The translations under genes were made by a program, and so were the position numbers. Of a stretch of DNA of 64,000 bases, positions 2,211 to 60,523 are shown piece by piece. The stretch's first letter is position 1, and each line of letters starts with the position of its first letter. The stretch is taken from the sequence record NC_048821.1; one strand, 5' to 3'. Below the pieces are notes generated by a model. It did no database searches and had not been told where the DNA came from. It saw nothing but the letters and a program-made list of their open reading frames with translations.

Positions 2211-4976
2211 TTAGAACAAATCCATAGGACTAGCGGAGGTAACAACTTTTGGTACGAATGCTGCTTCATCCCATAATACTTTATCAGGATCGAATAAATC
2301 CTCCGTACCAGCCACACCCACTAAGGTGACATCATCACCGTGTTGCACTGACATGATTTGTGCAACTTGCTGCTTACTCCACTCCATGATATCCAAGTTA
2401 CGACCAGTGACGTTTTCACGCCCATTGGTGTCTAACTCGAAAATGTATGCGAAGGTTGGCGCGGTTTGACCCTGACGGTGGACACGAGCAATGGTTTGAG
2501 TCATAATGTACTCTCGCCAAGGTGCGTTCATACACAACACCTGGTTAGCCATAAGTAGAGGATAACCGGTAGATAAAGATTTGAACGTCGTGATCAGAGG
2601 GTTCTTGGCATCCTTCAGTTCAAACTCTTTAACTAGACGATCTCGATCGTTTGTGTTTTCTCCGTAAACGAAGATAGTATCGTAACCCTGACGACTCAAG
2701 TAGTCATCACATTCGTAGACTACGTCAACGTGATCCGTAAAGATCAACGTTTTCTTTTCTACATGATCAATGTACTTAGGGAGATCGGCATATTCCACCA
2801 AAGCCTTAACAGCTTCGATACGAGCTTTACCCAACACGTTACCTAACGCTTCACCTTGTATCTTCAGACCAACGTATTTAACAATGGACTTAGCATTACG
2901 GAAGTGTTTGCGGTCAGTAGGTGCCATCCAAGTTTCGATATCCAACTCAATAGCCTTTGCACGTTTAGACAATTCCGCGTCAGTAAAGTTATTGTAACCT
3001 TCTTTACGGAATTTATTTACGATGGTGAGGTACTCATCTAATTCGGCTAAAGCTTGCAAGTCATTACGCTTACTACAATAAACACGATAATCGGAAATCA
3101 CTTGGTTAAAGTAATCAACGTATTTATCCATGTTGTTAGAGTAATACTTGTAGCGGTCTTGGATGTAAGTTTGCATCTGATTACGGATGGAATCCAAAGT
3201 GAAGTGTTCCGCATTAGGGACTTTAACCTTGACTCGTTCCGCAGGAGGTGCGTCACCCATACCGTCTAATACCGCAATGGTGTATTTCTCTGCACCGATA
3301 CGGTGAGCCAACAGCTCATTAAGTTTGTCGCGAGAACGACCATAACCGTCCAGAAAGGCTTTACGAACGTTACCCTTAAAGAACCCATCAATAAGACAAA
3401 AGACCGCGTACGACTCTTTACCAATGCCTTTAATAGGAGTACCTGACATAGGTAATGCGTCTGTGAACTTGTAGACTTCATTATACTCGATGAGTTTCTT
3501 AGTCCGTTTAGAGTTAGGGTCGTTGAAGTTGTGACATTCGTCGACGATCATTTTAAACGCAGGATTCCCGGCATTAAACTGATTAATCATTCTCATGTAT
3601 TTGTCACACAACGGATCCAACATAAACTCATAATGGATAAAGTAATACTCGTCGTCTTTTTGAGGGGGACGTCCCATTTTAGAATGCCAGAACTTCGGTG
3701 GTTTAACCCATACTTCATGTTTGATGTTATTGGTCATGTGGTTCGCCCACACTTCGTCAATCACGTTGAGAGGAACAAACCCAACAGTCTTACCTTTGGG
3801 TAACGATTCAGCCCACATCAAAGATAACGCCGTGTTATGGGTCACGATGTAGTCATCGGTGATGTAAAGATGATCAGGACCTTCCACCATTATACATTGG
3901 GTGAGTTGGTCTTCTTTTCGGGTGATGTTCTTGATTCGAATACGGTCAAGCCCTAAATGGGTTTCTACCAACCATCCATCAGATTCAGGGATTAACTTGG
4001 CGTGGTGACCTAGACTGCGAGCCACTTCTACCACTAAGTTAGCCAAGTGTTCGTCGTCAAAACGTCCATGAGCTTGACCTGGTTCTAGGACTCCGCGTAA
4101 CCAAGAATAACGTTCGTCGTTTGTGGTTTTGTGGATCAGGTCACGGTCATAACCGTTCTTAGCTCCTACACGAAGAGACATGCCTTGGTTAAACCAACTA
4201 GGGATGAGTTCTTCCGGTATGATAGAGTCGATCAAAGGTATGTAGTGAGGTTGGTCAGCGTAGGTGTCCATGATGTCTTGGGTTTCTTTTACTAACCATT
4301 CGCCATCAACATACACTTTCCATAAGTGCTCTGGGTTACACTGAGTTTTACGGCCATCTTCTAGTTCTACTTCAACGACTTCGGTAAGTCCCTGAGGATA
4401 GACACCCAATACCGTGGTATATCCTCCGTCCGGAGTCTCTATGACTTTACCACGATACATCTCACCCATGGTAGACCAACCACCTGGAACTTTGATTTTC
4501 GCATTTAATGGCTGAGCTTTACCACTACCTGCTTTACCGTCTAACAACAAACCTTTTAGGTGGTACGATTCTTTGCGGGAAGTGTATGTTTCTAGGAATC
4601 GGAGTTGTGGGTCCAGAGGTTTAAGTTTAACTGTGCGTTTTAACTTATTGTAATCAAACGTAGATGGTTTAGGGACCATGGTGTCCAGTATCCACGTCTC
4701 AGTTTGAATAAGCTCTTGAACTTTCTTTAGATCTCGACGATTCACCCGTGTACTTTTTAACTGCAAGAGTTTAGTTATTAGGTGATTGAGCTCCAAAAGG
4801 AAAAATGACTTGACTTCGAATTTACGTGAGTTAATTCGATTCATCATATACTTCGTTACGGTCGTGGTTCCGTAAAGTCTAATTATGTCCTGTTCGAAAG
4901 GTCGCCACGATAACCCGCTGATAATAGCACGATTATCGTCAACCTCGATACTAGGTCCGAATAAACCACTAAACAT
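2211..4976 (-). CDS. SF2 (SNF2/DEAD-like) helicase containing an intein
   Basis: Walker A GKAGSGK|T split by an intein; DECH motif II; SGTP motif III; C-terminal STG..L and QTIARVHRQGQ motifs. Confidence 0.9.
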   Translation of the reverse strand: MFSGLFGPSIEVDDNRAIISGLSWRPFEQDIIRLYGTTTVTKYMMNRINSRKFEVKSFFLLELNHLITKLLQLKSTRVNRRDLKKVQELIQTETWILDTMVPKPSTFDYNKLKRTVKLKPLDPQLRFLETYTSRKESYHLKGLLLDGKAGSGKAQPLNAKIKVPGGWSTMGEMYRGKVIETPDGGYTTVLGVYPQGLTEVVEVELEDGRKTQCNPEHLWKVYVDGEWLVKETQDIMDTYADQPHYIPLIDSIIPEELIPSWFNQGMSLRVGAKNGYDRDLIHKTTNDERYSWLRGVLEPGQAHGRFDDEHLANLVVEVARSLGHHAKLIPESDGWLVETHLGLDRIRIKNITRKEDQLTQCIMVEGPDHLYITDDYIVTHNTALSLMWAESLPKGKTVGFVPLNVIDEVWANHMTNNIKHEVWVKPPKFWHSKMGRPPQKDDEYYFIHYEFMLDPLCDKYMRMINQFNAGNPAFKMIVDECHNFNDPNSKRTKKLIEYNEVYKFTDALPMSGTPIKGIGKESYAVFCLIDGFFKGNVRKAFLDGYGRSRDKLNELLAHRIGAEKYTIAVLDGMGDAPPAERVKVKVPNAEHFTLDSIRNQMQTYIQDRYKYYSNNMDKYVDYFNQVISDYRVYCSKRNDLQALAELDEYLTIVNKFRKEGYNNFTDAELSKRAKAIELDIETWMAPTDRKHFRNAKSIVKYVGLKIQGEALGNVLGKARIEAVKALVEYADLPKYIDHVEKKTLIFTDHVDVVYECDDYLSRQGYDTIFVYGENTNDRDRLVKEFELKDAKNPLITTFKSLSTGYPLLMANQVLCMNAPWREYIMTQTIARVHRQGQTAPTFAYIFELDTNGRENVTGRNLDIMEWSKQQVAQIMSVQHGDDVTLVGVAGTEDLFDPDKVLWDEAAFVPKVVTSASPMDLF
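3834..4517 (-). mobile_element. Intein (228 aa, Ala1 start, class 3-type) with degenerate LAGLIDADG remnant
   Basis: Residues 154-381: starts AQPLNAKI, block B CNPEHLW, block F QCIMV, ends IVTHN followed by Thr(+1); inserted in the P-loop. Confidence 0.9.
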
Positions 4977-5023
4977 ATTAACCTCTTATTATAGTTTAAA
5001 TCAAAAAGAAAAAGGAAACTGAC

Positions 5024-6382
5024 ATGACTAAGTCAAAACCTAACCACGAACTTTGGAAACTGTTTGTCTACGTTGCGGAAGCACTCAGTGAACGCACATT
5101 CGTCATGCCGGTTATGGAACACGGGACTATGGCACTATCCCACACTGGTATTGACCCAGAAGACATGGAGATCACTATCAGTGAACACGAGTACTTGCCG
5201 ATGACTCGTATTCGTGTGGACTTCAACCTTCCAGTTGAATTGGAAGAGTACTTAAAGTCCGACGACCCGGCAATGCCTGCTGGAGCTAAAGATCTTAAGA
5301 AATGGTTCGATGAGCGCGGTCCTGTAGAGTACTTAATCTACAACGTGATGGTGAAAACCATTCTGGAACAACTTACCGAAATCCGCAAAGGTATGAGTGA
5401 AGCGACTACCTATGAAGATCAAACTAAGTTGAAAGAGCTGATCAAGTTCCTAGCCAACCTGAGCATGGAAGACGTCGCAGAAGATGTACGAAAACATCGT
5501 AACAAACATTACCCAATGGTAGTAAACCGTGTCTTTAATGTAACCGTTCAAGAACCATCTGATGAATGGATTGCAGAACACTTTGGTGACATGACAGCAC
5601 ACGACGTACAACACGTTGAGACTGTAGTAAACCGCAACGCTAAGCGTATTGCAGACAGTCTAGGTAAGATTGGTGATTTGGTCAACAACTGGTCTGGTAA
5701 GACTGAACAAGTCAAGGATAATGACTTATGGTTCTCACTCAACATCGAAGATCATAAAATCACTCTAGGCTTAGACTTCCAACCTTACCGTTCTGAATCA
5801 GATTTTGTTATTGAACGCTCCCCGGTCGATCTTGAAAAATGGGGTGAAGATAACAATGACCGTGATATCTTATCTAAGATCCAAAACCACATTGATGACA
5901 TGAATATTGTTATTGGTAACTTGCTGAATTACAACACTGGTTATGAAGTGTTGAACAAAGAAATTGAACAATTGTACATCCGTTCTATCCACCACCCTAT
6001 CGCTAAACACACTGTTCGTGTTTGGGGTTTTGATGATGTGTGTGAAGCAGGTCGTGCTAAGATTGATGAAGAGATTTCTTGGATGCTGGAAACCATCAAT
6101 GATCTATCGACTCAGATGTCTCGTGAAGTGAAGCTGGATATTTCTAACATGTACTTACACACTACACAAGACGGTGAAACTTTCATCTTGCCACACGACG
6201 AACAGTTAGTAGCAAAACGTTGTCAGACTTACTCAGGTACGTTCTACGATGCATTACAGCAACATCTGTACGATGTGGAGACTGAACTGTTTGCACCTTA
6301 CACTAACGTGAAGCCAGCTGATTTAGAGTCTAACAACGTCATCACCGAAGAAGACTTGCTTAACTCTCCTACCATCCATTAA
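5024..6382 (+). CDS. Hypothetical protein (452 aa)
   Basis: Long ORF with AAGGA SD; no recognised motif. Confidence 0.8.
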   Translation: MTKSKPNHELWKLFVYVAEALSERTFVMPVMEHGTMALSHTGIDPEDMEITISEHEYLPMTRIRVDFNLPVELEEYLKSDDPAMPAGAKDLKKWFDERGPVEYLIYNVMVKTILEQLTEIRKGMSEATTYEDQTKLKELIKFLANLSMEDVAEDVRKHRNKHYPMVVNRVFNVTVQEPSDEWIAEHFGDMTAHDVQHVETVVNRNAKRIADSLGKIGDLVNNWSGKTEQVKDNDLWFSLNIEDHKITLGLDFQPYRSESDFVIERSPVDLEKWGEDNNDRDILSKIQNHIDDMNIVIGNLLNYNTGYEVLNKEIEQLYIRSIHHPIAKHTVRVWGFDDVCEAGRAKIDEEISWMLETINDLSTQMSREVKLDISNMYLHTTQDGETFILPHDEQLVAKRCQTYSGTFYDALQQHLYDVETELFAPYTNVKPADLESNNVITEEDLLNSPTIH

Positions 6383-6852: not shown

Positions 6853-7608
6853 ATGTCCAATAAACACATTAAAAACGTTATCACTTCAGGCCGTTACGTT
6901 CCAGAGAAAGGTAAGTTCGGTATTACTTTCACTATTATCGATTGTGAAGGTAAAGAAGTTTCCCTGCTCGTAAACAACGAAGAAGTTCATCGCAACTGGA
7001 TTAAAAGCGATCGTTCAGAACACCGAGTGGGTATTGACTTAGAACGCTTCGACCTCACACACTTCACGTTGAAAATCTTAGTACATAAAGACGGTAACCC
7101 TATCGAACTTAAGGGCTTCGAATACGACGTTGTTCCAGAGAGTGTCCTCGCATCGAAAAACATCATTTCGATAGGGGAGAACTTAAAATCGTTGAAACGT
7201 AACCTAGATATCATCACCCACATGGCGTTCCGTGCCAGAATGGATTTCAATAAAGAAAATCCTTCGATGAGAGAGAGCCGAGTCGGCACCAAGTTTTTAG
7301 AGTTCAGTACCCCAGAATTAGAGTACCTGTTCTTTGTACGTAACACCCGTAATAACGGAATGCCTTTGTTAACCATGTACTGTACAGACTTGAATGGCGC
7401 ACAACACGAAGTTAACTTCCGCCTAATGGGCTGGCAAGTAACTCGAGACAAAATCTTAAATACCGTCGCTAAGTCATCGGTGATGAAAGCACTAATTGAT
7501 TTATCTAAGCCTTCTGGCACTAAATCACTGTTACGTCTGGCGGACGATGAGCGATACAAAGAAACCTTACGTGAAACTCTATTAACTGTAACTCGTCATG
7601 AGAAATAA
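6853..7608 (+). CDS. Hypothetical protein (251 aa), beta-rich N-terminal domain
   Basis: ORF with AAGGA SD downstream of the early promoter. Confidence 0.75.
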   Translation: MSNKHIKNVITSGRYVPEKGKFGITFTIIDCEGKEVSLLVNNEEVHRNWIKSDRSEHRVGIDLERFDLTHFTLKILVHKDGNPIELKGFEYDVVPESVLASKNIISIGENLKSLKRNLDIITHMAFRARMDFNKENPSMRESRVGTKFLEFSTPELEYLFFVRNTRNNGMPLLTMYCTDLNGAQHEVNFRLMGWQVTRDKILNTVAKSSVMKALIDLSKPSGTKSLLRLADDERYKETLRETLLTVTRHEK

Positions 7609-7617
7609 GGAAATAAA

Positions 7618-9141
7618 ATGAATAAGAGTATTTTAGCGGCACTGGACGTTTTAGCGACTTCCGTGGAAATGCAAGAACGTCAACTCCAAATCCGCACAGG
7701 TAACCGAGAAATGTTACAAGGTGTTATTGCGGATGCCTTGCTCCCTGAAGAATACCGAGTGAATAACTTTGGTTACGGAGGGCGTGATGAAATTAAACTA
7801 GACCCAGTGTATCGATTAGTTCGTAATAATGATACCTGGGATGATTTCGATCTCCCTAAAGATAAGGAGGGGTGGGAATCATTATTGGATAAAGTTGATC
7901 CAGAGTTAAAGAAAAACGTCACAGTAACAGAACGTCTTACCCTAGACCTGGGTTGGGGTGTGGCTAAAATGGGACTTTGTAGTTTGGAGTGGGTTTATAC
8001 CTTCGTTGGGTTTGATGACTTTAATATCATGAAAACCATATTAAAGCCTAACCCGCTACTGGAAAACGAACTGAATCGTCGAGTCTTGGAGCTGGTGTCT
8101 AACGCACATGACAACACGAGTAATGAAAGAAAGAATTTCATTAACTCGACCAGCGGTGCTTTAAACCGTGCGGTGGATTTACGAAACACTTTAGTGGAGC
8201 GCGGGTTAATACCTTTCTTTGACAAATATAAAAAGGTTCAGGTTGCCTGGGGGCATGTGGATAAACTAATGTCCGGGGTCTCACAAATCCCAATCGATTT
8301 AAATAAGGACAAAGAACTCTTGTTATCTTTGTGTTATTTAAACTATAATTTGGTCGTGGGAGCAAACAATATGGTCGGGCTAACCGAATTCGATAATGGA
8401 AAGTACACTCCTATTGACTTTAACGACCCAGAACAGTTCACACCAAGTGTAGTGAAGGCATTAAACGAAATGCTGGACAAAGTGGACATTCCGGAAACTA
8501 CCGGTAATGTTCGATGGGAAAACCTGAGAGCGGTTCGAAACAATCGCCCGGACTACGGGTTCAGTCCTTGTCACGTTCTTACTATTCGAATTAAAGACAT
8601 GTCCGGTGAGCAACTGACTCGCGATATGTTTATCCACTCCAAGGAACCGTTAGACTCCAAGGTCTTAGGTAAATTAGCTAAGCAAACCCGGGAGTTCGTG
8701 TCTAATGAAACCGCCCTTATGTCTGCGACCACGGATAATTGTAACCTAGTAGAAGGTCACCTTATTAACTTTGTTGAAGCGTTTGGGTTATCCAACAACG
8801 TAGAGTTAAAGGTAACACGTCGTCACCAGGTGATCGTTTATCTTGGGGAAGACAAGACATACTCGTTTGAGTCACGTAAGGGAGTCTCTCCGGCCTTTAT
8901 TGATTTCATGCATAAACTATGTGGTGTTGAATTAAAACCTCTCCACGAGCTTCCTGAGGACCTTAAACAGGACTTAGGACCTTATACTTGTATGGACGCA
9001 AGACATACGACAGTTTTGTGTAAAACCAATGATGTCGAATTCCCTGAAACTCATCTCCTGGATCAAATCATAGATAGACTCAGTACTTCTGGAAACCTTA
9101 ACGAAGACTGGATTTATAACACCGTAAACGAAATCATTTAA
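7618..9141 (+). CDS. Hypothetical protein (507 aa)
   Basis: Long ORF, AAGGA SD. Confidence 0.8.
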   Translation: MNKSILAALDVLATSVEMQERQLQIRTGNREMLQGVIADALLPEEYRVNNFGYGGRDEIKLDPVYRLVRNNDTWDDFDLPKDKEGWESLLDKVDPELKKNVTVTERLTLDLGWGVAKMGLCSLEWVYTFVGFDDFNIMKTILKPNPLLENELNRRVLELVSNAHDNTSNERKNFINSTSGALNRAVDLRNTLVERGLIPFFDKYKKVQVAWGHVDKLMSGVSQIPIDLNKDKELLLSLCYLNYNLVVGANNMVGLTEFDNGKYTPIDFNDPEQFTPSVVKALNEMLDKVDIPETTGNVRWENLRAVRNNRPDYGFSPCHVLTIRIKDMSGEQLTRDMFIHSKEPLDSKVLGKLAKQTREFVSNETALMSATTDNCNLVEGHLINFVEAFGLSNNVELKVTRRHQVIVYLGEDKTYSFESRKGVSPAFIDFMHKLCGVELKPLHELPEDLKQDLGPYTCMDARHTTVLCKTNDVEFPETHLLDQIIDRLSTSGNLNEDWIYNTVNEII

Positions 9142-34923: not shown

Positions 34924-36354
34924 ATGAAACCGACTAACGTTTCTTTATTAAACCCAAGCAAGATAGCTTGGTCGCTGATGAGACCCGTGTCCTCAGCGGA
35001 TGTAAACGAGGGTTCTTCTACCAGTCTGCACCCAGACGGGTTGTATTCGGTAGAAACCTTCGGACGAGTTGGTAGTGCGGAACGTGATCGTAAGTTATCT
35101 TACATTGACGTAAAACTACCTATCTTTAACCCTACGTATTTCAAGGCCATGATTACACTCAAATCTTTATACTTGGGTATAATCAAAGGGACGGAATACG
35201 CCGTCTGGGATAGTGAGACTAAAGACTTCATAAAATCCAACTTGTTGGATGGAGAAACCGGTTACAGTTTCTTTATGCGTTACTTCAATGAGTTAGAACC
35301 GAAGTTAACGGAATCTTTCCGACGTAAAAAGAAAATCGAACTATTCCACACCTACCGACCTCAAGCACTTTGTAATAAAGTCATTGTTATTCCGGCAGGT
35401 TTGCGTGACGTGCAGTTTTCCCCAGATGGTCGTACCATTGAACCTGAGATCAACGAATACTACCGTAAGTTGTTGTTCCGAACCAAGGCAGTAGTGGTCG
35501 GTGAAGGGGAAGAAGATTCTCCGGTTTACGATAACTTGCGTTGGGGCGCGCAATCTAACTTCAACGACATCGATACTTATATCCAAGGATTGATGAAAGG
35601 TAAAACCGGTTTCTGGCAGAAGCGGGTTGCAACTCGTGGTGTAGTTGGTGGTACTCGTAACGTTATTTCGGCTCGTCATGTTTCTGTGGAAGACGCGGAT
35701 GCACCGAACAACGTCGACGTCAATACCACGGACATTGGTTTATACCAAGCTATGTTGGAGTTCCAGTACACTTGTCGTTACGGGATGTTAAATGGTTGGG
35801 TTCAGAACGTCTTCACCATTGGTTCTAACTTAGCTAAGCTGGTTAACCCTAAAACCTTTGAATACGAGTATAAGGAAGTCGACACTAAAGTAGTCGATAA
35901 ATGGATGACACCGGAAGGACTCACTCGTCTATTTAACGGATTTAAAGACAGTCACCTACGAGCTAAACCTATCATGATTGAAGGACTCTACATGGGTCTT
36001 ATTTACGATGATGGTGAAACAGTTAAAATCGTTGGTGATAAGTCTGAGATTGGTGATCGTGACGTCAAGCACTTGCGTCCTCTGACTTACATGGAGTTGT
36101 TCTACATTAGCTGTGGTAACTTGATTGAATCCAGAATGAGTCAAATCACACGTTACCCTATTACTGGTGTGGGTTCCATATACCCGTCTAAAATCAACCT
36201 CCGCACTACGATTCAGTCCAAACCTCGTATTCTCCTAGATGAATTCTGGGAAGAAGACAAACGTCTAAACAACTACCCTATTTTAACAGGTCGACCGAGT
36301 TACTTTGATGCCATGTCAGTTGACGGTTCTAGACTAGAACGTCTGGGTGGTGAC
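34924..36354 (+). CDS. Virion RNA polymerase beta' N-terminal subunit, exon 1 (phiKZ gp180-like)
   Basis: HPDGLYSVETFGRVG, VIVIPAGLRD, GTRNVIS, RYPITG; ends RLERLGGD at the first Asp of the catalytic motif, then TAA. Confidence 0.85.
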
Positions 36355-36383
36355 TAAGGAATTAGTGTCAAGTCCTTACCTAA

Positions 36384-36414
36384 CTTATTTTATAACAAAC
36401 GTTAAAATAAGGAG
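36384..36414 (+). promoter_or_regulatory. Hairpin overlapping the endonuclease Shine-Dalgarno
   Basis: CTTATTTT(AT)AAC-AAAC-GTTAAAATAAG stem covers the start of AAGGAG (36409-36414). Confidence 0.55.
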
Positions 36415-36420
36415 CTGGTA

Positions 36421-37671
36421 ATGGAAGTGAATTTTAAATTTAATGCGCGTGAATATACTTTAAAAGATGATTTGAATTTATATCGTGAAAATAAAGAAGT
36501 GGTTTTATTTGAAGACCTTTCCGAAGGAACCTTTTTCATTGAATCAGGTGTGAAGGTGTTTTTAGGTAAAGCAATCATGGAATATTGGAATAGGTGTTAT
36601 TTACCTAGAGAGTACTGGGATAAGATGAAAGTTGTCTTTAAAGACAAAGATAAACTGAACTTTACCCCCACTAACCTTTTTCCGTACTATAAAGAAAAAA
36701 TAGAACACCCAAGTATAAAGGGTTTTTACTTTATCCCTGGGGAAGAGTTAAATGTCATTAACTCTAAAGGTGAAGTTTACCAGCTTAAGAAAGATCGGTA
36801 CCGTTTACCCTATCTTGGTAAGGAAGGTGAAGATAATTCTAATTTTTACCCTTTTACGAGATGTGATGTTGTTAATAAAGATAATAGGTTATTGACACAC
36901 CGTTTAATAGGGTTGACATTCTGCGACCCACCTGAAGATTACCCAAACATGCACGTCGATCACAAAAATGGTGACAAACAAGATTTCTCCCAACTTAACC
37001 TGCAATGGTTGACCCCATATGAGAATATGATGAAAGGTGCGTATAAGGATGGAAATAATAAACAGGTTATTTCTGTTGATGTTTATGATAAGTTAACAAA
37101 AAACTCATCTTCTTATCCGAGTCTTTCTAACTTTGCAAACGTGTTAGGAGTAAATCCCACTTGTGTAATAAACGCTTTCAATACCCCTAATAAGACTTAT
37201 AAAGGGAGGTACGTTATCAAGGCGACTTCCGATAACACAACCTTTGAAGAATTGTTAGATTTAAAGAAAGTTAAGTACACTAACTTTGAAAGCATGAATT
37301 TAAAAACCGGTGAAGTTTTTAAATGGCGAAACGTCGACGAGTTTATAAAAAATAACGGTGGGGGGAGAGGAACGATACGAAAGGTTTTGGAGAACAAGAC
37401 TTCCGGAATTGTGCAGTGGCATATCTTTAGAAAACCGGGTGACTCATGGAACACACCTACCGACTACGACAAAGAAATTTATCGTAGGGGGTTGCAACCC
37501 ACGACAAAGGTCTATGAAATACAGGACCTTGCAAAAAATAAAACCCACATCTGTTATGGTAAAAAAGAATTAATCCAAATCATCCCTGATATAAATTCTA
37601 GAACTATTACCTTCGTAGTTCGAGAAAAGAGAAAGTATAAACAACGTTATTTAATTAAAACCTTGAACTAA
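36421..37671 (+). CDS. Intron-encoded HNH homing endonuclease with C-terminal NUMOD1-like repeats
   Basis: THRLIGLTF...VDHKNGDK...NLQWLTPYEN; three repeated VYD/MNL/IQD..T..Y/W modules; visibly AT-rich. Confidence 0.85.
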   Translation: MEVNFKFNAREYTLKDDLNLYRENKEVVLFEDLSEGTFFIESGVKVFLGKAIMEYWNRCYLPREYWDKMKVVFKDKDKLNFTPTNLFPYYKEKIEHPSIKGFYFIPGEELNVINSKGEVYQLKKDRYRLPYLGKEGEDNSNFYPFTRCDVVNKDNRLLTHRLIGLTFCDPPEDYPNMHVDHKNGDKQDFSQLNLQWLTPYENMMKGAYKDGNNKQVISVDVYDKLTKNSSSYPSLSNFANVLGVNPTCVINAFNTPNKTYKGRYVIKATSDNTTFEELLDLKKVKYTNFESMNLKTGEVFKWRNVDEFIKNNGGGRGTIRKVLENKTSGIVQWHIFRKPGDSWNTPTDYDKEIYRRGLQPTTKVYEIQDLAKNKTHICYGKKELIQIIPDINSRTITFVVREKRKYKQRYLIKTLN

Positions 37672-38074
37672 TTCAAGTCCCATTAGGCACGAAAGTCCTA
37701 GACCGTTTTCTCTTGAATTGCTGGGATGTCCACAAAAGCTTACAACCAAAGGGTGGCCTGAAAGGGCTCACACAACGACCTGAGGGTGTCGAAAGACAGA
37801 AACAATAGTAAGCCTGCTCTATGCTAACCAATAACGCTAAGGAGTGTATACAAGGGACGATCAGCAGCTACGCTTCCTAAGGGGATAACCTATGGAGCAA
37901 GTTCAACGACTAGGGCCTTGCCAGCCTGTACCTACTAGCAGAGTTTAGTGGGGAAGTGTGAGAATACCTAAGTCCTTATGGATATGGTAAAGATATAGTC
38001 TGTTCCCAGTTTAAGAGACAGGGCGGGTGTCTGAGCACACCGGCTACCTAAGCGATTAGGTGGTGGACAATAAG

Positions 38075-38239
38075 CAACTTAACAGTAACGGTATCGAGGC
38101 CGAAGATTCCATCAAACAAGCTTTAAAGCGTATGGGTGAACGTAGTTACTATATCACTGGTACAGGGTCATTTTTATATGAACCTATTGTTGAGCCTCAC
38201 GAATTCTTATTACGCGCTCTAACTAGCGGCTTGGAGTAA
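38075..38239 (+). CDS. Virion RNA polymerase beta' N-terminal subunit, exon 2 (54 aa, not in the ORF track)
   Basis: Open frame QLNSNGIEAEDSIKQALKRMGERSYYITGTGSFLYEPIVEPHEFLLRALTSGLE right after the intron 3' G; QL aligns with QM after NADFDGD. Confidence 0.75.
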   Translation, partial: QLNSNGIEAEDSIKQALKRMGERSYYITGTGSFLYEPIVEPHEFLLRALTSGLE

Positions 38240-48678: not shown

Positions 48679-48739
48679 GCACTAAAGTAATTCGATAGGA
48701 GGAACTCCCTCCTATCTTTTTAGAGCAAGTGAGGTTATC

Positions 48740-48847
48740 ATGATTAAACTATTTTTCTTTCTATTCGTCGCCTACTACTTCATTAAGTTTATTCGAACTT
48801 GGTGGCGAGCTTTAAATAATTTCAACAAACTTTTCAATAAGGATTAA
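48740..48847 (+). CDS. Small membrane peptide (35 aa, not in the ORF track)
   Basis: GAGGT SD; MIKLFFFLFVAYYFIKFIRTWWRALNNFNKLFNKD. Confidence 0.55.
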   Translation: MIKLFFFLFVAYYFIKFIRTWWRALNNFNKLFNKD

Positions 48848-48851
48848 GTCC

Positions 48852-49325
48852 ATGAACCTATTAGTTATTCTACCAATCACTCTTCTTGCTCTAGTACTTT
48901 GCATTGTAGTTTACCGTCAATACAACGTAGACGGTGTTGAATCACTATTTATGCGTTGGTTCGATACTGGTGATCGTTTTACAGTAGCAGTTTACAATAC
49001 TGAAACAAACGACCACGAACTAACTCTTATGGTGGTACGTGACCGTACTCGCCCTACTGAGTTAGTATATGACAACGACAACAAATCATACGTACTTTCA
49101 TTAGGTACAAACCCACGTGAGCCTTACGAGACTCACATGCGCGCTCTAGAAGCTTTACAGTACAACCAAATCGAACGTGAAGGTAAAGAACACATCCTTT
49201 ACAAAGATCTTGAGATCATCCGTATGATCATGACCGATACTGTGGACCCTCGCTTCAACGAACAAACTAAAGATCAATTCGAGACGGTACGTAAACAATA
49301 CGCACACTTCTTGGACAGCATGTAA
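48852..49325 (+). CDS. N-terminally membrane-anchored protein (157 aa)
   Basis: LLVILPITLLALVLCIVVY. Confidence 0.75.
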   Translation: MNLLVILPITLLALVLCIVVYRQYNVDGVESLFMRWFDTGDRFTVAVYNTETNDHELTLMVVRDRTRPTELVYDNDNKSYVLSLGTNPREPYETHMRALEALQYNQIEREGKEHILYKDLEIIRMIMTDTVDPRFNEQTKDQFETVRKQYAHFLDSM

Positions 49326-49353
49326 TACCACCGATAATAAAAGAGAAATAATT

Positions 49354-57560: not shown

Positions 57561-58815
57561 ACAAATTAAAGAATTAATGTACCAACTGGTCGATTCATTC
57601 TCGATTATTGCTAACCTTAAACACCATAAAGCGGTTCAGTATTTGAACAGCGGGCATTGTTACGCGGTGGCGACGTTAGCACAACACATCTTAAAAGAGA
57701 AATATGACATCACAGTGAACTTGAAGTCTCACCCACATCATAGTTTCTTTGAATATGACGGTGTCTACTACGATACTTTGTTTCCGGTAGGTTATCCACT
57801 ACACCCTTCTGAGGTGTGGCGTATGGAAGAGGCTCGGTGTCGTAAGACTTTAGATGACTGGGCGTTTGGAGAGTGCATGATGGTTAACCCAGACCCAACT
57901 ATCATCGCTTGGGTGGAGTACGTTACGGAAAGACTCGGAATCAGTCAACCTAAGTTTTACTGGGAGATGATAGAAACTTTCGAAGATCGTTCTACTTATG
58001 ATAAGAAAGCAACTCGTAAAGTCTACCATCACAAACTAGGCAAGTACCGTCGTAAGGTTAAACGTTACCGTCTCCGAGCATGGAAGTTCCGTAACGTAGA
58101 ATGGAAAACGTTCATGATTGGTTGGATGGCGGAGTTTACCCCTTATCCGGAAGATCTTTGGGTGGATTTAGAAGTCATTGAATACGATAAGTGGGTGAAG
58201 AAAGTAATCTCTACCGTTTACCCTCCTTACGAAGAAGTGATGGAGAAGTGTTTTGGTGACGATGTCTTTGACTCCCCTAATGTTCAAGCGATGGGTCGAT
58301 TAAGTGACATCTGTACAGGTGGTGAAGTGGGGTTTAAGCGGGACAACCTTTGGGGTGTATGTGCCAGCACTGGTCTCGAGTTAAGTGCTTCTATGGAAGT
58401 GAAGTCTCCTGTGGGACCCCTAGAGGTTTCGGAGGAAGTGGATAAAATACTGGAAGACGCAGCACAGCACTTGAATGAGAAACACCAACAGTCTAGTTTC
58501 CCTCGTGGTTGTTCTGCTAACGTCAAAATGTACGATGATGCTTGTTATCAACATTACATGAATGCACGGTCTGAAGCCCCAGGTCTTTTGAACTTGACAT
58601 GTCATCACTGGAAGGTAATCGACGAGGCTTGCAAAAGAATAAAGGACGGGGAAGTCTTTGATCCTAAAAGAGTGCTTACATTAGGTTCACCTGATAAACT
58701 AGAAGATGATCCTAAACGTGTACTCTTTGCCGTCGAAGATAACGAGGGTAAAGTGAGCTACACGAGTGATCGAGAAGCGTGGTTAAATAGGGACTCCGGT
58801 GACTGCGAGGAATAA
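57553..58815 (+). CDS. Multidomain protein with N-terminal Cys-His-Asp domain (420 aa)
   Basis: NSGHC...HHSF..YDGVYYD, paralogous to 56596..57165. Confidence 0.6.
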   Translation: MSKQIKELMYQLVDSFSIIANLKHHKAVQYLNSGHCYAVATLAQHILKEKYDITVNLKSHPHHSFFEYDGVYYDTLFPVGYPLHPSEVWRMEEARCRKTLDDWAFGECMMVNPDPTIIAWVEYVTERLGISQPKFYWEMIETFEDRSTYDKKATRKVYHHKLGKYRRKVKRYRLRAWKFRNVEWKTFMIGWMAEFTPYPEDLWVDLEVIEYDKWVKKVISTVYPPYEEVMEKCFGDDVFDSPNVQAMGRLSDICTGGEVGFKRDNLWGVCASTGLELSASMEVKSPVGPLEVSEEVDKILEDAAQHLNEKHQQSSFPRGCSANVKMYDDACYQHYMNARSEAPGLLNLTCHHWKVIDEACKRIKDGEVFDPKRVLTLGSPDKLEDDPKRVLFAVEDNEGKVSYTSDREAWLNRDSGDCEE

Positions 58816-59044: not shown

Positions 59045-59416
59045 ATGTTTAAAAAGGAAAACTTGAAGATTCTTGTTATAGGGGTAGTGTTAGCGATCAG
59101 TTATCAGGTTGCCCTGAGCCTGGTGCCCAATACTTATGAATCAGAAGGCGAAATTGTCAATATCCGCGAGGAGGTTCATCAGATCGATGTCATTAACTTT
59201 CCAACCGTCGGTGAGAGTAAACGTGTCGAACCAGAAAGTCACTCCTTCGTACGCTATGAGATAGAAGTCTTAATAAACAGAAAGATAGTCTCTTGCATAT
59301 TAAAGGAAGAACAATACGGTTTGTTAAACGGGACTAATTTCGTTAACATGTCTTATGAGATGATGGACAACGGTGAGTACCGTTGCATGAATTTGAAACC
59401 TGCTGAGGACGTGTAA
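59045..59416 (+). CDS. Membrane-anchored beta-barrel/OB-like protein
   Basis: ATG at 59045 after AAGGA SD; TM segment then two Cys. Confidence 0.65.
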   Translation: MFKKENLKILVIGVVLAISYQVALSLVPNTYESEGEIVNIREEVHQIDVINFPTVGESKRVEPESHSFVRYEIEVLINRKIVSCILKEEQYGLLNGTNFVNMSYEMMDNGEYRCMNLKPAEDV

Positions 59417-59715
59417 TGAAAACCAGTACTAGTTGGGTGTGTCGAGCTGTTTCTGCTTCCCTGATCACTGCACTGTCGTTGTTCATAATTTGGTGTGCGG
59501 TCAATTACCAGATATTCATTGTGGAAGGTTATGTTACCGATGTGTTTAAAGTTGATGGTTCTGAGTACGATTACTTCATTCGAACGGAAGTGGATTTATT
59601 CCAATGTCGGATTGGGGAAGAAGAACATCTCATCATTGGGGAGGAGCGTCACTTGAGTGTTATGTATGGTGAGTACCCAACCGGAGAACGGACTTGTCTC
59701 TATATCGGTATTTAA
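59416..59715 (+). CDS. Membrane-anchored beta-barrel/OB-like protein (paralogue)
   Basis: TAATG coupling; TM segment then the same strand and Cys pattern. Confidence 0.65.
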   Translation: MKTSTSWVCRAVSASLITALSLFIIWCAVNYQIFIVEGYVTDVFKVDGSEYDYFIRTEVDLFQCRIGEEEHLIIGEERHLSVMYGEYPTGERTCLYIGI

Positions 59716-59793: not shown

Positions 59794-60057
59794 ATGGACT
59801 TTCTAAAAGAAAAAGCTACTGTCAATGAACTTCGTGTAATCAAAGCTGTCACTGGTCTAGCTATCGGTGGTGTTTCAATCGCGATGAATGAAGAACTTCC
59901 AGTAGGCAAGCTTGCTTGTACCGCAGCAGGTACTACGATGGCAGTCATGAATACTTCAGAAAGAGACACTCGTCGTCTAGGTGCTCGTGAAAATGCTATC
60001 TGGGAAACTGTAGGTAGTGTTGCGCTTGTTAGTATCGTCGGAAGCCTATTCTCATAA
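59794..60057 (+). CDS. Small hydrophobic membrane protein (87 aa)
   Basis: Three Gly/Ala-rich hydrophobic segments; AAGGA SD. Confidence 0.65.
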   Translation: MDFLKEKATVNELRVIKAVTGLAIGGVSIAMNEELPVGKLACTAAGTTMAVMNTSERDTRRLGARENAIWETVGSVALVSIVGSLFS

Positions 60058-60077
60058 ATCTTTAAAAGGAACCTGTC

Positions 60078-60479
60078 ATGGAAAACTTCATCTACAATGG
60101 GATCAACTACATGGACCTTGTGAAAGCAAGCGTTGGTGAACACACTATCTATATCAGTAAATGGGATGTAGAAAAGAAGATCAAAAACGATGTTATTCAA
60201 CTTACAGAAGAACGTCCAACTGAGTTCAACACAGAACTCCATATTGAAATTAACTTGACTATTTATTCAAGTGTGATTGTTCATGTGGTTGATTCCTTGC
60301 AAGCTCTGGAGATTGCTAAAGAGCTTTCTTCTAAGCTTAGTAAAGAAGTTACCATTTATTCACATGCTCGTCATTTAGCTCGATTCCTAAAAGGTGAGCA
60401 GGTCGGTCAGGTGAAAACATTGGACGATTTCTATACGAACATCACTGAAGAACAACGAGCACTGACTCGCTTAAAATAA
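60078..60479 (+). CDS. Hypothetical protein (133 aa)
   Basis: AAGGA SD. Confidence 0.7.
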   Translation: MENFIYNGINYMDLVKASVGEHTIYISKWDVEKKIKNDVIQLTEERPTEFNTELHIEINLTIYSSVIVHVVDSLQALEIAKELSSKLSKEVTIYSHARHLARFLKGEQVGQVKTLDDFYTNITEEQRALTRLK

Positions 60480-60494
60480 ACAGAATGCAGAAAA

Positions 60495-60523
60495 CCTCCT
60501 ACTACCCAATGGGTAGTAGGAGG
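60495..60523. terminator. Terminator (related hairpin family)
   Basis: 13-bp stem CCTCCTACTACCC/GGGTAGTAGGAGG between convergent genes. Confidence 0.8.

Follow-up and report, generated by a model that had tools for sequence, protein, structure and literature searches.

A hybrid group I intron in the catalytic loop of the virion RNA polymerase beta' gene of Photobacterium phage PDCC-1

Introduction

How can a viable phage carry, as the one copy in its whole record, a virion RNA polymerase gene that lacks codons for part of its catalytic site? This question is raised by Photobacterium phage PDCC-1 (MN562221 / NC_048821), in which the gene for a beta'-like polymerase subunit is interrupted by a group I intron in the D-x-D-G-D loop. 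PDCC-1 is a 237.5-kb jumbo phage (Gorgonvirinae, Aphroditevirus) and its genome codes for a nuclear-shell protein and PhuZ. The virion RNA polymerase is essential in phiKZ-like phages and PDCC-1 is a viable isolate, so the record presents a paradox.

We analysed a stretch of 64,000 nucleotides (nt) of NC_048821.1, called the window below; positions are those of the window unless stated otherwise, and a window coordinate plus 124000 gives the coordinate in the PDCC-1 record. The protein of exon 1 in the window matched PDCC-1 at 100%. An earlier note on this DNA had described the split loop and proposed that a catalytic micro-exon is supplied from elsewhere, or that a locus with two introns had collapsed, biologically or during assembly. 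Comparison with relatives points to a fusion of two neighbouring introns.

Gene identity and missing codons

The split gene is predicted to encode the beta'-like N-terminal subunit of the virion RNA polymerase. A profile built from 14 intact homologues matched the AR9 beta' chain 7S01_d (E 2.5e-6), with DHDGD aligned with DYDGD; the PDB search with the single subunit sequence gave no match, and a profile search was needed. No Pfam family was significant for the subunit. Exon 1 matched PHROG 2986, annotated as 'RNA polymerase beta subunit', at profile positions 5-484 (E 1.6e-200), and exon 2 matched positions 491-539. The gene order is that of the relatives, with a 2356-amino-acid (aa) protein on the minus strand (virion lysin-like, with a glycoside hydrolase 19 domain), the beta'-like subunit and then a 1453-aa RNA polymerase subunit. 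This synteny and the annotation of one relative suggest the virion rather than the non-virion enzyme.

The open reading frame (ORF) 34924-36357 ends in SVDGSRLERLGGD, with the codons GGT GAC TAA. The ORF list agrees here with the earlier reading; the exon 1 protein ends in LGGD, and the TAA at 36355-36357 is intron sequence lying after exon 1. Intron-free relatives (Aphrodite1, phiKT1019, pTD1, USC-1, Klebsiella phage Miami and 24 IMG/VR contigs) read LGGD-[Y/F/H]DGD-QLNSN across the same point. D-x-D-G-D was found at all of the 37 loci compared except PDCC-1, in every relative read across both exons (about 48 in all, PDCC-1 being the sole exception), and without variation in the 14-sequence alignment. 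The claim that the residues xDGD are missing was borne out, since the intron-free relatives read D-x-D-G-D-Q-L and not GGDQL. In PDCC-1 the first Asp alone is encoded, and two of the three catalytic aspartates are absent.

Splicing at other positions did not restore the motif. A regular-expression search of 36300-38100 found no GAYGGNGAY on either strand, as the earlier manual scan had reported, and among 55,000 enumerated single-splice joins none yielded D.DGD in any frame. One candidate, a 5' splice site one base downstream (GACT^, the caret marking a splice site) with a 3' site at GTGG^ACAATAAG, would give GGDYNKQL; it was rejected, as this product contains no DGD and the tail is intronic in Vibrio phage VP4B.

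The Asp triad binds the catalytic magnesium in all multisubunit RNA polymerases. As recorded, and as predicted from its sequence, the PDCC-1 virion beta' gene cannot make an active enzyme. It might be held that the record is correct and clonal, and that polymerase activity persists with one of the three catalytic aspartates or through use of the non-virion beta'. The viability of the phage would suit this explanation, as would the record, which is the sole source of data. Against it stand the invariance of the motif among the relatives, the role of the triad in this whole class of enzymes and the two beta' paralogues of PDCC-1, which have no similarity detectable by tblastn. We consider this explanation scarcely credible.

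Parental introns and crossover

Four insertion sites were recognised in the D-x-D-G-D codons of the relatives: A after Asp1, B after Asp2, D after Gly and C after Asp3. Vibrio phage 2 TSL-2019 has a site-A intron with an HNH gene; its exon 1 ends GGC GAT and its exon 2 opens TAT GAT GGT GAC CAA (GGD^YDGDQL). Vibrio phage VP4B has an ORF-less site-C intron of 497 nt between ...GAT TAT GAC GGT GAT and CAA CTT AAC (GGDYDGD^QL). In Pseudomonas phage EL the intron, again with an HNH gene, is at site B, exon 1 ending in DSDHD and exon 2 opening with GDQL.

The PDCC-1 intron changes its nearest relative part way along. Compared with TSL-2019, the flanks are 80-95% identical, positions 36355-37700 are 100% identical, and the ribozyme beyond is about 60-62% identical. 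From 37701 onward PDCC-1 shows 89.8% identity to VP4B. The exact run of 1346 nt begins at the first intron base and stops at the last base of the 17-mer TAGGCACGAAAGTCCTA; it is the longest in 49 kb aligned to TSL-2019 at 87.8%, the runner-up being 665 nt. The flanking genes of PDCC-1 are 88.7% and 91.7% identical to those of TSL-2019, and 78.2% and 69.5% to those of VP4B. In IMG/VR the exact 5' intron start occurred in PDCC-1 and TSL-2019 only.

As read from these comparisons, the PDCC-1 intron is a fusion, in which the 5' splice site, P1/P1a and ORF of a site-A intron are joined to the P2 3' strand, core and 3' splice site of a site-C intron, and the crossover lies inside the 17-mer. Sites A and C are 12 nt apart, exactly the 12 nt missing from PDCC-1; with these bases gone, the codons for two of the three catalytic aspartates are absent.

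PDCC-1 and TSL-2019 share other exact stretches of 324-665 nt on the 87.8% background, at 48682-49346, 60045-60508, 58252-58682 and 59390-59713. Segments pass often between the two lineages, which were isolated in Mexico and Australia.

Ribozyme and splice sites

An Rfam scan of the window at the gathering threshold returned nothing. In E-value mode RF00028 matched 37660-38023 with 38.7 bits (E 7.7e-8), the Rfam gathering score being 50; four relatives scored above gathering, namely L057 (63.8), FishSpeaker (53.9), TSL-2019 (51.7) and VP4B (51.2). The earlier reading of a group I intron interrupting the catalytic loop of beta' is supported. For seven family ribozymes RNAalifold gave a group I-like consensus of 91 pairs, 51 of them with compensatory changes, and none of the pairs was broken in PDCC-1. 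The P3/P7 pseudoknot cannot be drawn by this program; the P7 strands were invariant.

Homology fixes the 3' splice site after G38074 (…GGACAATAAG^CAACTT), where the terminal omega G is present. VP4B has the same intron end followed by the same exon, and the last 33 nt of the two introns are identical, which places the opening of exon 2 at CAA CTT where it had been proposed. The introns of ZKP1 and FishSpeaker end in …GGACAACAGG^CAA and …GGACAAAGAG^CAA.

The 5' splice site was examined with RNAduplex in nine introns. All have the same predicted P1 plus P1a design, in which the 5' splice-site region pairs with the bases directly before P2. P1 consists of exon GAU and one to three intron bases paired with (N)GUC, and P1a follows beyond an internal loop; the ORF, where present, sits in the terminal loop of P1a. 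The PDCC-1 P1a (13 base pairs (bp), -16.1 kcal/mol) pairs across the ORF, which puts the HNH gene in the P1a terminal loop. GUCC before P2 was invariant in all seven aligned ribozymes. Since P1 reads GAU alone, a 5' splice site is available at each of the three Asp codons. The cleavage-site pair of P1 in PDCC-1 is C-G and not the usual U-G wobble, as exon 1 ends in GAC.

The earlier note had counted one ribozyme core and two copies of TCAAGTCC, at 36368 and 37673, and both observations hold. The 8-mer occurs three times in the window against 2.3 expected, which is not significant. The first copy gives UCAAG to P1a and the second is the real guide sequence; a target-site duplication was discarded as the source of the repeat, the count being within chance and the copies better explained by these two roles. 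The suggestion that the guide would prefer an exon ending in GGGAT failed, as P1 uses only GAU (here GAC) with GUC at 37677-37679.

Three further observations concern the fold. CUUGA at 37662-37666 can pair with UCAAG of the first TCAAGTCC copy, forming P1a, or locally with the second copy; this local hairpin surrounds the HNH stop codon and was drawn as P1 by cmscan. The alternative pairing may possibly be a switch that couples endonuclease translation to ribozyme folding. GUCC at 37677-37680 is complementary to GGAC at 38065-38068, six bases before the 3' splice site, and RNAalifold paired them in six of the seven introns; both sides are invariant, so the pairing carries no covariation evidence, and it could be a helix positioning the 3' site or an alternative to P1. 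The intron tail at 38053-38068, TTAGGTGGTGGAC, resembles the exon 1 end of relatives (phiKT1019: TTAGGTGGTGAC). It is also present in VP4B and makes the 3' strand of P9.2; the likeness may be chance or a relic.

HNH endonuclease

The intron ORF is predicted to be an HNH homing endonuclease, I-HmuI-like, in a peripheral loop. Residues 160-204 matched Pfam HNH_3 with 45 bits (cut-off 24.8), and PHROG 59 was matched with E 3e-22. Its stop codon, 37669-37671, lies inside the 3' strand of P1a. The PDCC-1 and TSL-2019 proteins match at 100% identity; identity to the site-A ORF product of L087 is 40%, and to the intron ORF products of EL, FishSpeaker and ZKP1 it is 28-34%. Searches of JGI metagenomes with the protein and of IMG/VR with the HNH alignment found nothing new.

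State of the hybrid

At -1 of the 5' splice site PDCC-1 has C, whereas the 15 other family introns compared all have U. These were seven at site A (TSL-2019, L068-I1, L087-I1, L088, L091, L092 and the intron of the PDCC-1 non-virion beta' gene), EL and L057 at site B, L068-I2 at site D, and VP4B, FishSpeaker, ZKP1, L086 and L087-I2 at site C. Where relatives had no intron at site A, the Asp1 codon was GAC, VP4B (GAT) being the one exception. With GAC at Asp1, the PDCC-1 exon end looks like that of a recipient allele that never needed to splice there.

P2 is itself a hybrid of only 5 bp, with a 5' strand of the site-A type (CAUUAGG) and a 3' strand of the site-C type (CCUAGACCG). CAUUAGG is perfectly complementary to CCUAAUG of TSL-2019 and poorly to the CCUAGACCG of PDCC-1; the local fold of the PDCC-1 P2 had -5.7 kcal/mol, against -9.0 to -13.2 in nine relatives with matching strands. 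As the 5' P2 strand of the module fits the 3' strand of TSL-2019, the module appears native to the site-A intron, which gives the direction of the transfer.

Compared with VP4B, the site-C ribozyme has 56 differing columns. Unpaired positions account for 45 of them; four pairs changed in a fully compensatory way and none disruptively, and the P2 junction is the sole uncompensated difference in paired columns. This pattern indicates that the site-C ribozyme worked under structural constraint until the fusion. The 1346-nt module has accumulated no substitution since then. As far as the sequence can tell, the hybrid shows no adaptation.

Twin introns and the insertion hot spot

An uncollapsed counterpart occurs in nature. 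In the contig L087 (Logan ERR11042258_7836, 2958-5534), a tandem of introns occupies sites A and C, with the 12-nt micro-exon TTTGACGGTGAT (4688-4699) between them. The contig reads ...GGC GCT GAT, a site-A intron ending in GTGGACAATCTG, TTT GAC GGT GAT (FDGD), and a second intron starting with ATTTTAAGTG, within which the contig ends. The first intron contains an HNH gene and the ribozyme, and the second an HNH-like gene; the exon 1 protein (P0005) is 73% identical to that of PDCC-1. The alternative of the earlier note, a collapsed two-intron locus, was essentially right, the fusion being one of site-A and site-C introns.

A second twin locus, L068 (OGVK01003917.1, 113-960), was found by scanning metagenomes for the 17-mer. 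It reads ...LDSD(GAT), an intron at 122-547, the 9-nt micro-exon CACGATGGT (HDG, 548-556), an intron at 557-951, and GAT CAA TTA (DQL...). Its introns are at sites A and D, and each gave a match to RF00028 and to the family profile. In the second intron, P1 is GAUGGU paired with GCCAUC and takes six of the nine micro-exon bases. As P1 needs only exon GAU (GAUGGU in this site-D intron), each insertion site follows a U.

Both twins share gene, motif, intron family and HNH family with PDCC-1, and L087 has exactly sites A and C. They differ in having both ribozymes, the micro-exon and U at -1 of both 5' splice sites; in the PDCC-1 locus nhmmer detected one ribozyme and there was no micro-exon.

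In the first intron of L087 (4276-4692) the P2 is of the C type (CCGGCUAGG...CCUAGACCG) and the core resembles that of TSL-2019. The 17-mer of P2 appears to be a recurrent recombination junction in this intron family.

The loop is widely occupied. A protein search with exon 1 returned about 30 truncated proteins (P0004-P0115, from SRA and ENA assemblies) ending at the four sites. L086, with an exon 1 protein 89% identical to that of PDCC-1, has an ORF-less VP4B-like intron at site C; site-C introns with HNH genes were found in ZKP1, FishSpeaker and L087 (intron 2).

The existence of such HNH-bearing site-C introns suits a further explanation, that the PDCC-1 intron is a complete site-C hybrid. 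Exon 1 would then truly read ...GGT GGT GAC TAY GAY GGN GAT^TAAGG, and slippage between the imperfect repeats GGTGAYTA...GGTGAYTA would have removed 12 nt from the record or from a subpopulation; TAYGAYGGNGAT would be expected between 36354 and 36355. P1 needs only GAU plus U, so a site-A module could work at site C, and GAC at Asp1 would be accounted for. However, short-read assemblers make no 12-nt deletions without supporting reads, a true 12-nt deletion would be equally lethal, and the module swap would need a 9-nt microhomology rather than the long homology of exon 1. We hold this explanation to be quite improbable.

Search of the whole record

If the missing codons lay elsewhere, trans-splicing or a second intron half outside the window could supply the micro-exon. 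The whole PDCC-1 record was scanned with the GAYGGNGAY regular expression, the family nhmmer profile and, by blastn, the 5' part of the VP4B intron. The family profile found two ribozymes only, at E<=10. The second (7590-7981 of the record) belongs to the non-virion beta' gene (gp005 + gp006), where a complete intron without an ORF occupies the position that corresponds to site A. This intron is intact, with U at -1; the gene reads ...SNFNAD^intron^FDGDQMTLFF, and RefSeq gives its exons as separate genes. None of the 27 GAYGGNGAY sites in the whole record stood beside intron ends, except that in exon 2 of the non-virion beta' gene. A 5' intron part of the VP4B type was absent from the record even as a remnant, and the scan revealed no separate split-intron halves flanking a missing exon.

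An external micro-exon would explain the missing codons, and nothing further speaks for it. Against it, the second ribozyme is a complete cis intron (NAD^FDGDQM), the only GAYGGNGAY beside an intron end belongs to that intron's exon, and a VP4B-type 5' remnant is absent. This part of the earlier proposal was given up, and we judge it very improbable.

Origin of the junction

The history we propose for the fusion is as follows. At first the PDCC-1 lineage would have had, at site C, an intron without an ORF, similar to those of VP4B and L086. A site-A HNH intron identical to that of TSL-2019 would then have entered the same allele, and the exchange would have been resolved on the left at the exon 1/intron junction and on the right in the 17-mer of the P2 loop, instead of in exon 2. 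Between these points the site-A ribozyme (if ever present), the 12-nt x-D-G-D micro-exon and the 5' part of the site-C intron would have been lost. By an alternative route, the two P2 loops of a twin locus could have recombined, so that the locus collapsed. The resulting intron would have its 5' splice site after Asp1 and its 3' site before Gln, and splicing, if any, would give LGGD-QLNSN, which would be catalytically dead. We infer that the two introns were joined in vivo, by homologous recombination or a homing-type event.

What the compared sequences show directly is how the hybrid is built, which introns were its parents, within which interval the crossover lies, that the 12 nt are missing from the entire record, and that the twin form occurs in nature. 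We lean slightly towards the view that molecules with the recorded junction were really present in the sequenced DNA, because the 17-nt identity is shorter than the usual k-mers or overlaps and assemblers need reads spanning the junction. For the phage to be infectious, a form with the micro-exon retained must presumably be present too, in the phage itself or in a helper; the twin-intron arrangement would be the simplest such form. The full scenario of an intron collision, in which the HNH intron invades an allele occupied 12 nt away and repair in the P2 loop excises the catalytic micro-exon and kills an essential gene, is put forward tentatively, as a possibility with less than even chances.

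Several points weigh against a real null allele made in this way. PDCC-1 forms plaques, and a clonal stock with only a null allele of an essential gene should not propagate. Raw reads and an independent assembly of PDCC-1 were sought and not found, exact-protein look-ups returning its GenBank and RefSeq records only. A second example of the hybrid was not found in GenBank phages, IMG/VR or JGI metagenomes, and the recombination mechanism is deduced from its end points only.

A rival explanation is a collapse purely in silico. The true locus would then be a site-A intron with HNH gene, a 12-nt micro-exon and a site-C intron; in assembly or manual finishing the P2 regions of the two introns would have been fused, with the loss of about 490 nt. 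Such a collapse would leave the phage viable, the twin arrangement is known in a related phage (L087), a dropped piece below 500 nt is of a size often filtered, and the mismatched P2 would be an artefact, both true P2 stems being intact. On the other hand, the stretch common to the two P2 regions is just 17 bases long and ribozyme identity is about 62%, so that an assembler would have needed reads spanning the junction; moreover, a working site-A intron should have U at -1, as in the seven known, and the record has C. We regard the collapse in silico as unlikely, at roughly one chance in four. The sequence alone cannot tell a real null allele from a fault in the record.

Comparison with known systems

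The DNA polymerase introns of SPO1 and SP82, studied by Goodrich-Blair and Shub, reportedly carry the HNH nicking endonucleases I-HmuI and I-HmuII in a peripheral loop of a group I intron. As in PDCC-1, introns compete there for an occupied allele, and ORF and ribozyme evolve independently. In SPO1 and SP82, however, both introns are at the same site and replacement is harmless, whereas the PDCC-1 sites are 12 nt apart and the exchange removes coding sequence. Staphylococcus phage Twort is said, from the work of Landthaler and Shub in 1999 and 2002, to have several group I introns close together within one gene, in orf142 and nrdE. The micro-exons of L068 (9 nt) and L087 (12 nt) are far shorter than in Twort, and PDCC-1 presents a fusion at the DNA level, not exon skipping at the RNA level.

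The nucleus-forming jumbo phage PhiPA3 has a group I intron with an HNH nicking endonuclease in its virion RNA polymerase gene gp210 (Birkholz et al. 2024, PMC11620839). As in PDCC-1, the intron of this chimallivirus interrupts the gene of an essential virion RNA polymerase subunit where Asp codons are conserved; its endonuclease targets competing phages (PMC11620839). The PhiPA3 intron is in the beta subunit, whereas that of PDCC-1 is in the catalytic loop of beta'; it is a single intact intron, and its description mentions neither lost exon codons nor anything resembling a joining of two introns (PMC11620839).

Features and annotation

The features of the locus are collected in Table 1. In RefSeq and GenBank, exons 1 and 2 are annotated as separate 'RNA polymerase beta subunit' genes and no intron is marked. 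The coding sequence gp151 begins at GTG 38060, within the intron, and its start is wrong; the HNH endonuclease is labelled 'hypothetical protein'.

Table 1. Positions of the split beta' gene, its hybrid intron and the following gene in the window.
Feature	Position	Strand	Basis
Exon 1, virion RNA polymerase beta'-like N-terminal subunit (predicted), 477 codons	34924..36354	+	ORF list, PHROG 2986, synteny
Hybrid group I intron, 1720 nt	36355..38074	+	Homology: TSL-2019 for 5' end, VP4B for 3' end; RF00028
Site-A module: 5' splice site, P1/P1a strands, HNH gene, P2 5' strand and loop	36355..37700	+	Identical to TSL-2019 intron
P1 5' strand GAC^U, paired with AGUC 37676-37679	36352..36355	+	RNAduplex
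P1a 5' strand GAAUUAGU(G)UCAAG, paired with 37662-37674 (CUUGA ACUAAUUC)	36359..36372	+	RNAduplex
HNH homing-endonuclease gene (predicted), 416 aa	36421..37671	+	Pfam HNH_3, PHROG 59
Internal guide sequence AGUC (second TCAAGTCC copy), directly 5' of P2	37676..37679	+	Invariance, duplex prediction
Hybrid P2	37680..37708	+	Local fold
TAGGCACGAAAGTCCTA, 17-mer forming P2 loop and inner stem; crossover inside	37684..37700	+	Common to TSL-2019, VP4B and EL introns
Site-C ribozyme core (P3-P9.2) and 3' splice site (G38074), VP4B-like	37701..38074	+	Identity to VP4B
Exon 2, QLNSNGIEAED...SGLE then stop	38075..38239	+	PHROG 2986; alignment with intron-free relatives
Next virion RNA polymerase subunit gene, 1453 aa	38242..42603	+	PHROG 3148, E 0

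Significance

The deposited RefSeq reference of PDCC-1 encodes a dead virion RNA polymerase at this locus, and the record needs re-examination. The 15 bases coding for the universal magnesium-binding loop of beta' are a hot spot of mobile introns, with at least four sites and about 35 independent alleles in isolates, metagenomes and SRA assemblies. The P1-ORF module is exchangeable among the introns of this loop, and the 9- and 12-nt micro-exons show how tightly twin introns can pack. We believe that the four-site hot spot in beta', micro-exons of these lengths and the fusion of neighbouring introns with removal of coding sequence are new.

A real hybrid would be direct evidence that mobile introns, in competing with one another, can destroy the gene that hosts them, which is relevant to the proposal that co-infecting jumbo phages use intron endonucleases as weapons (PMC11620839). 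If intron collision is true, twin-intron loci would be its rare survivors; if it is also frequent, clustered insertion sites would make mobile introns weapons against intron-bearing as well as intron-free competitors.

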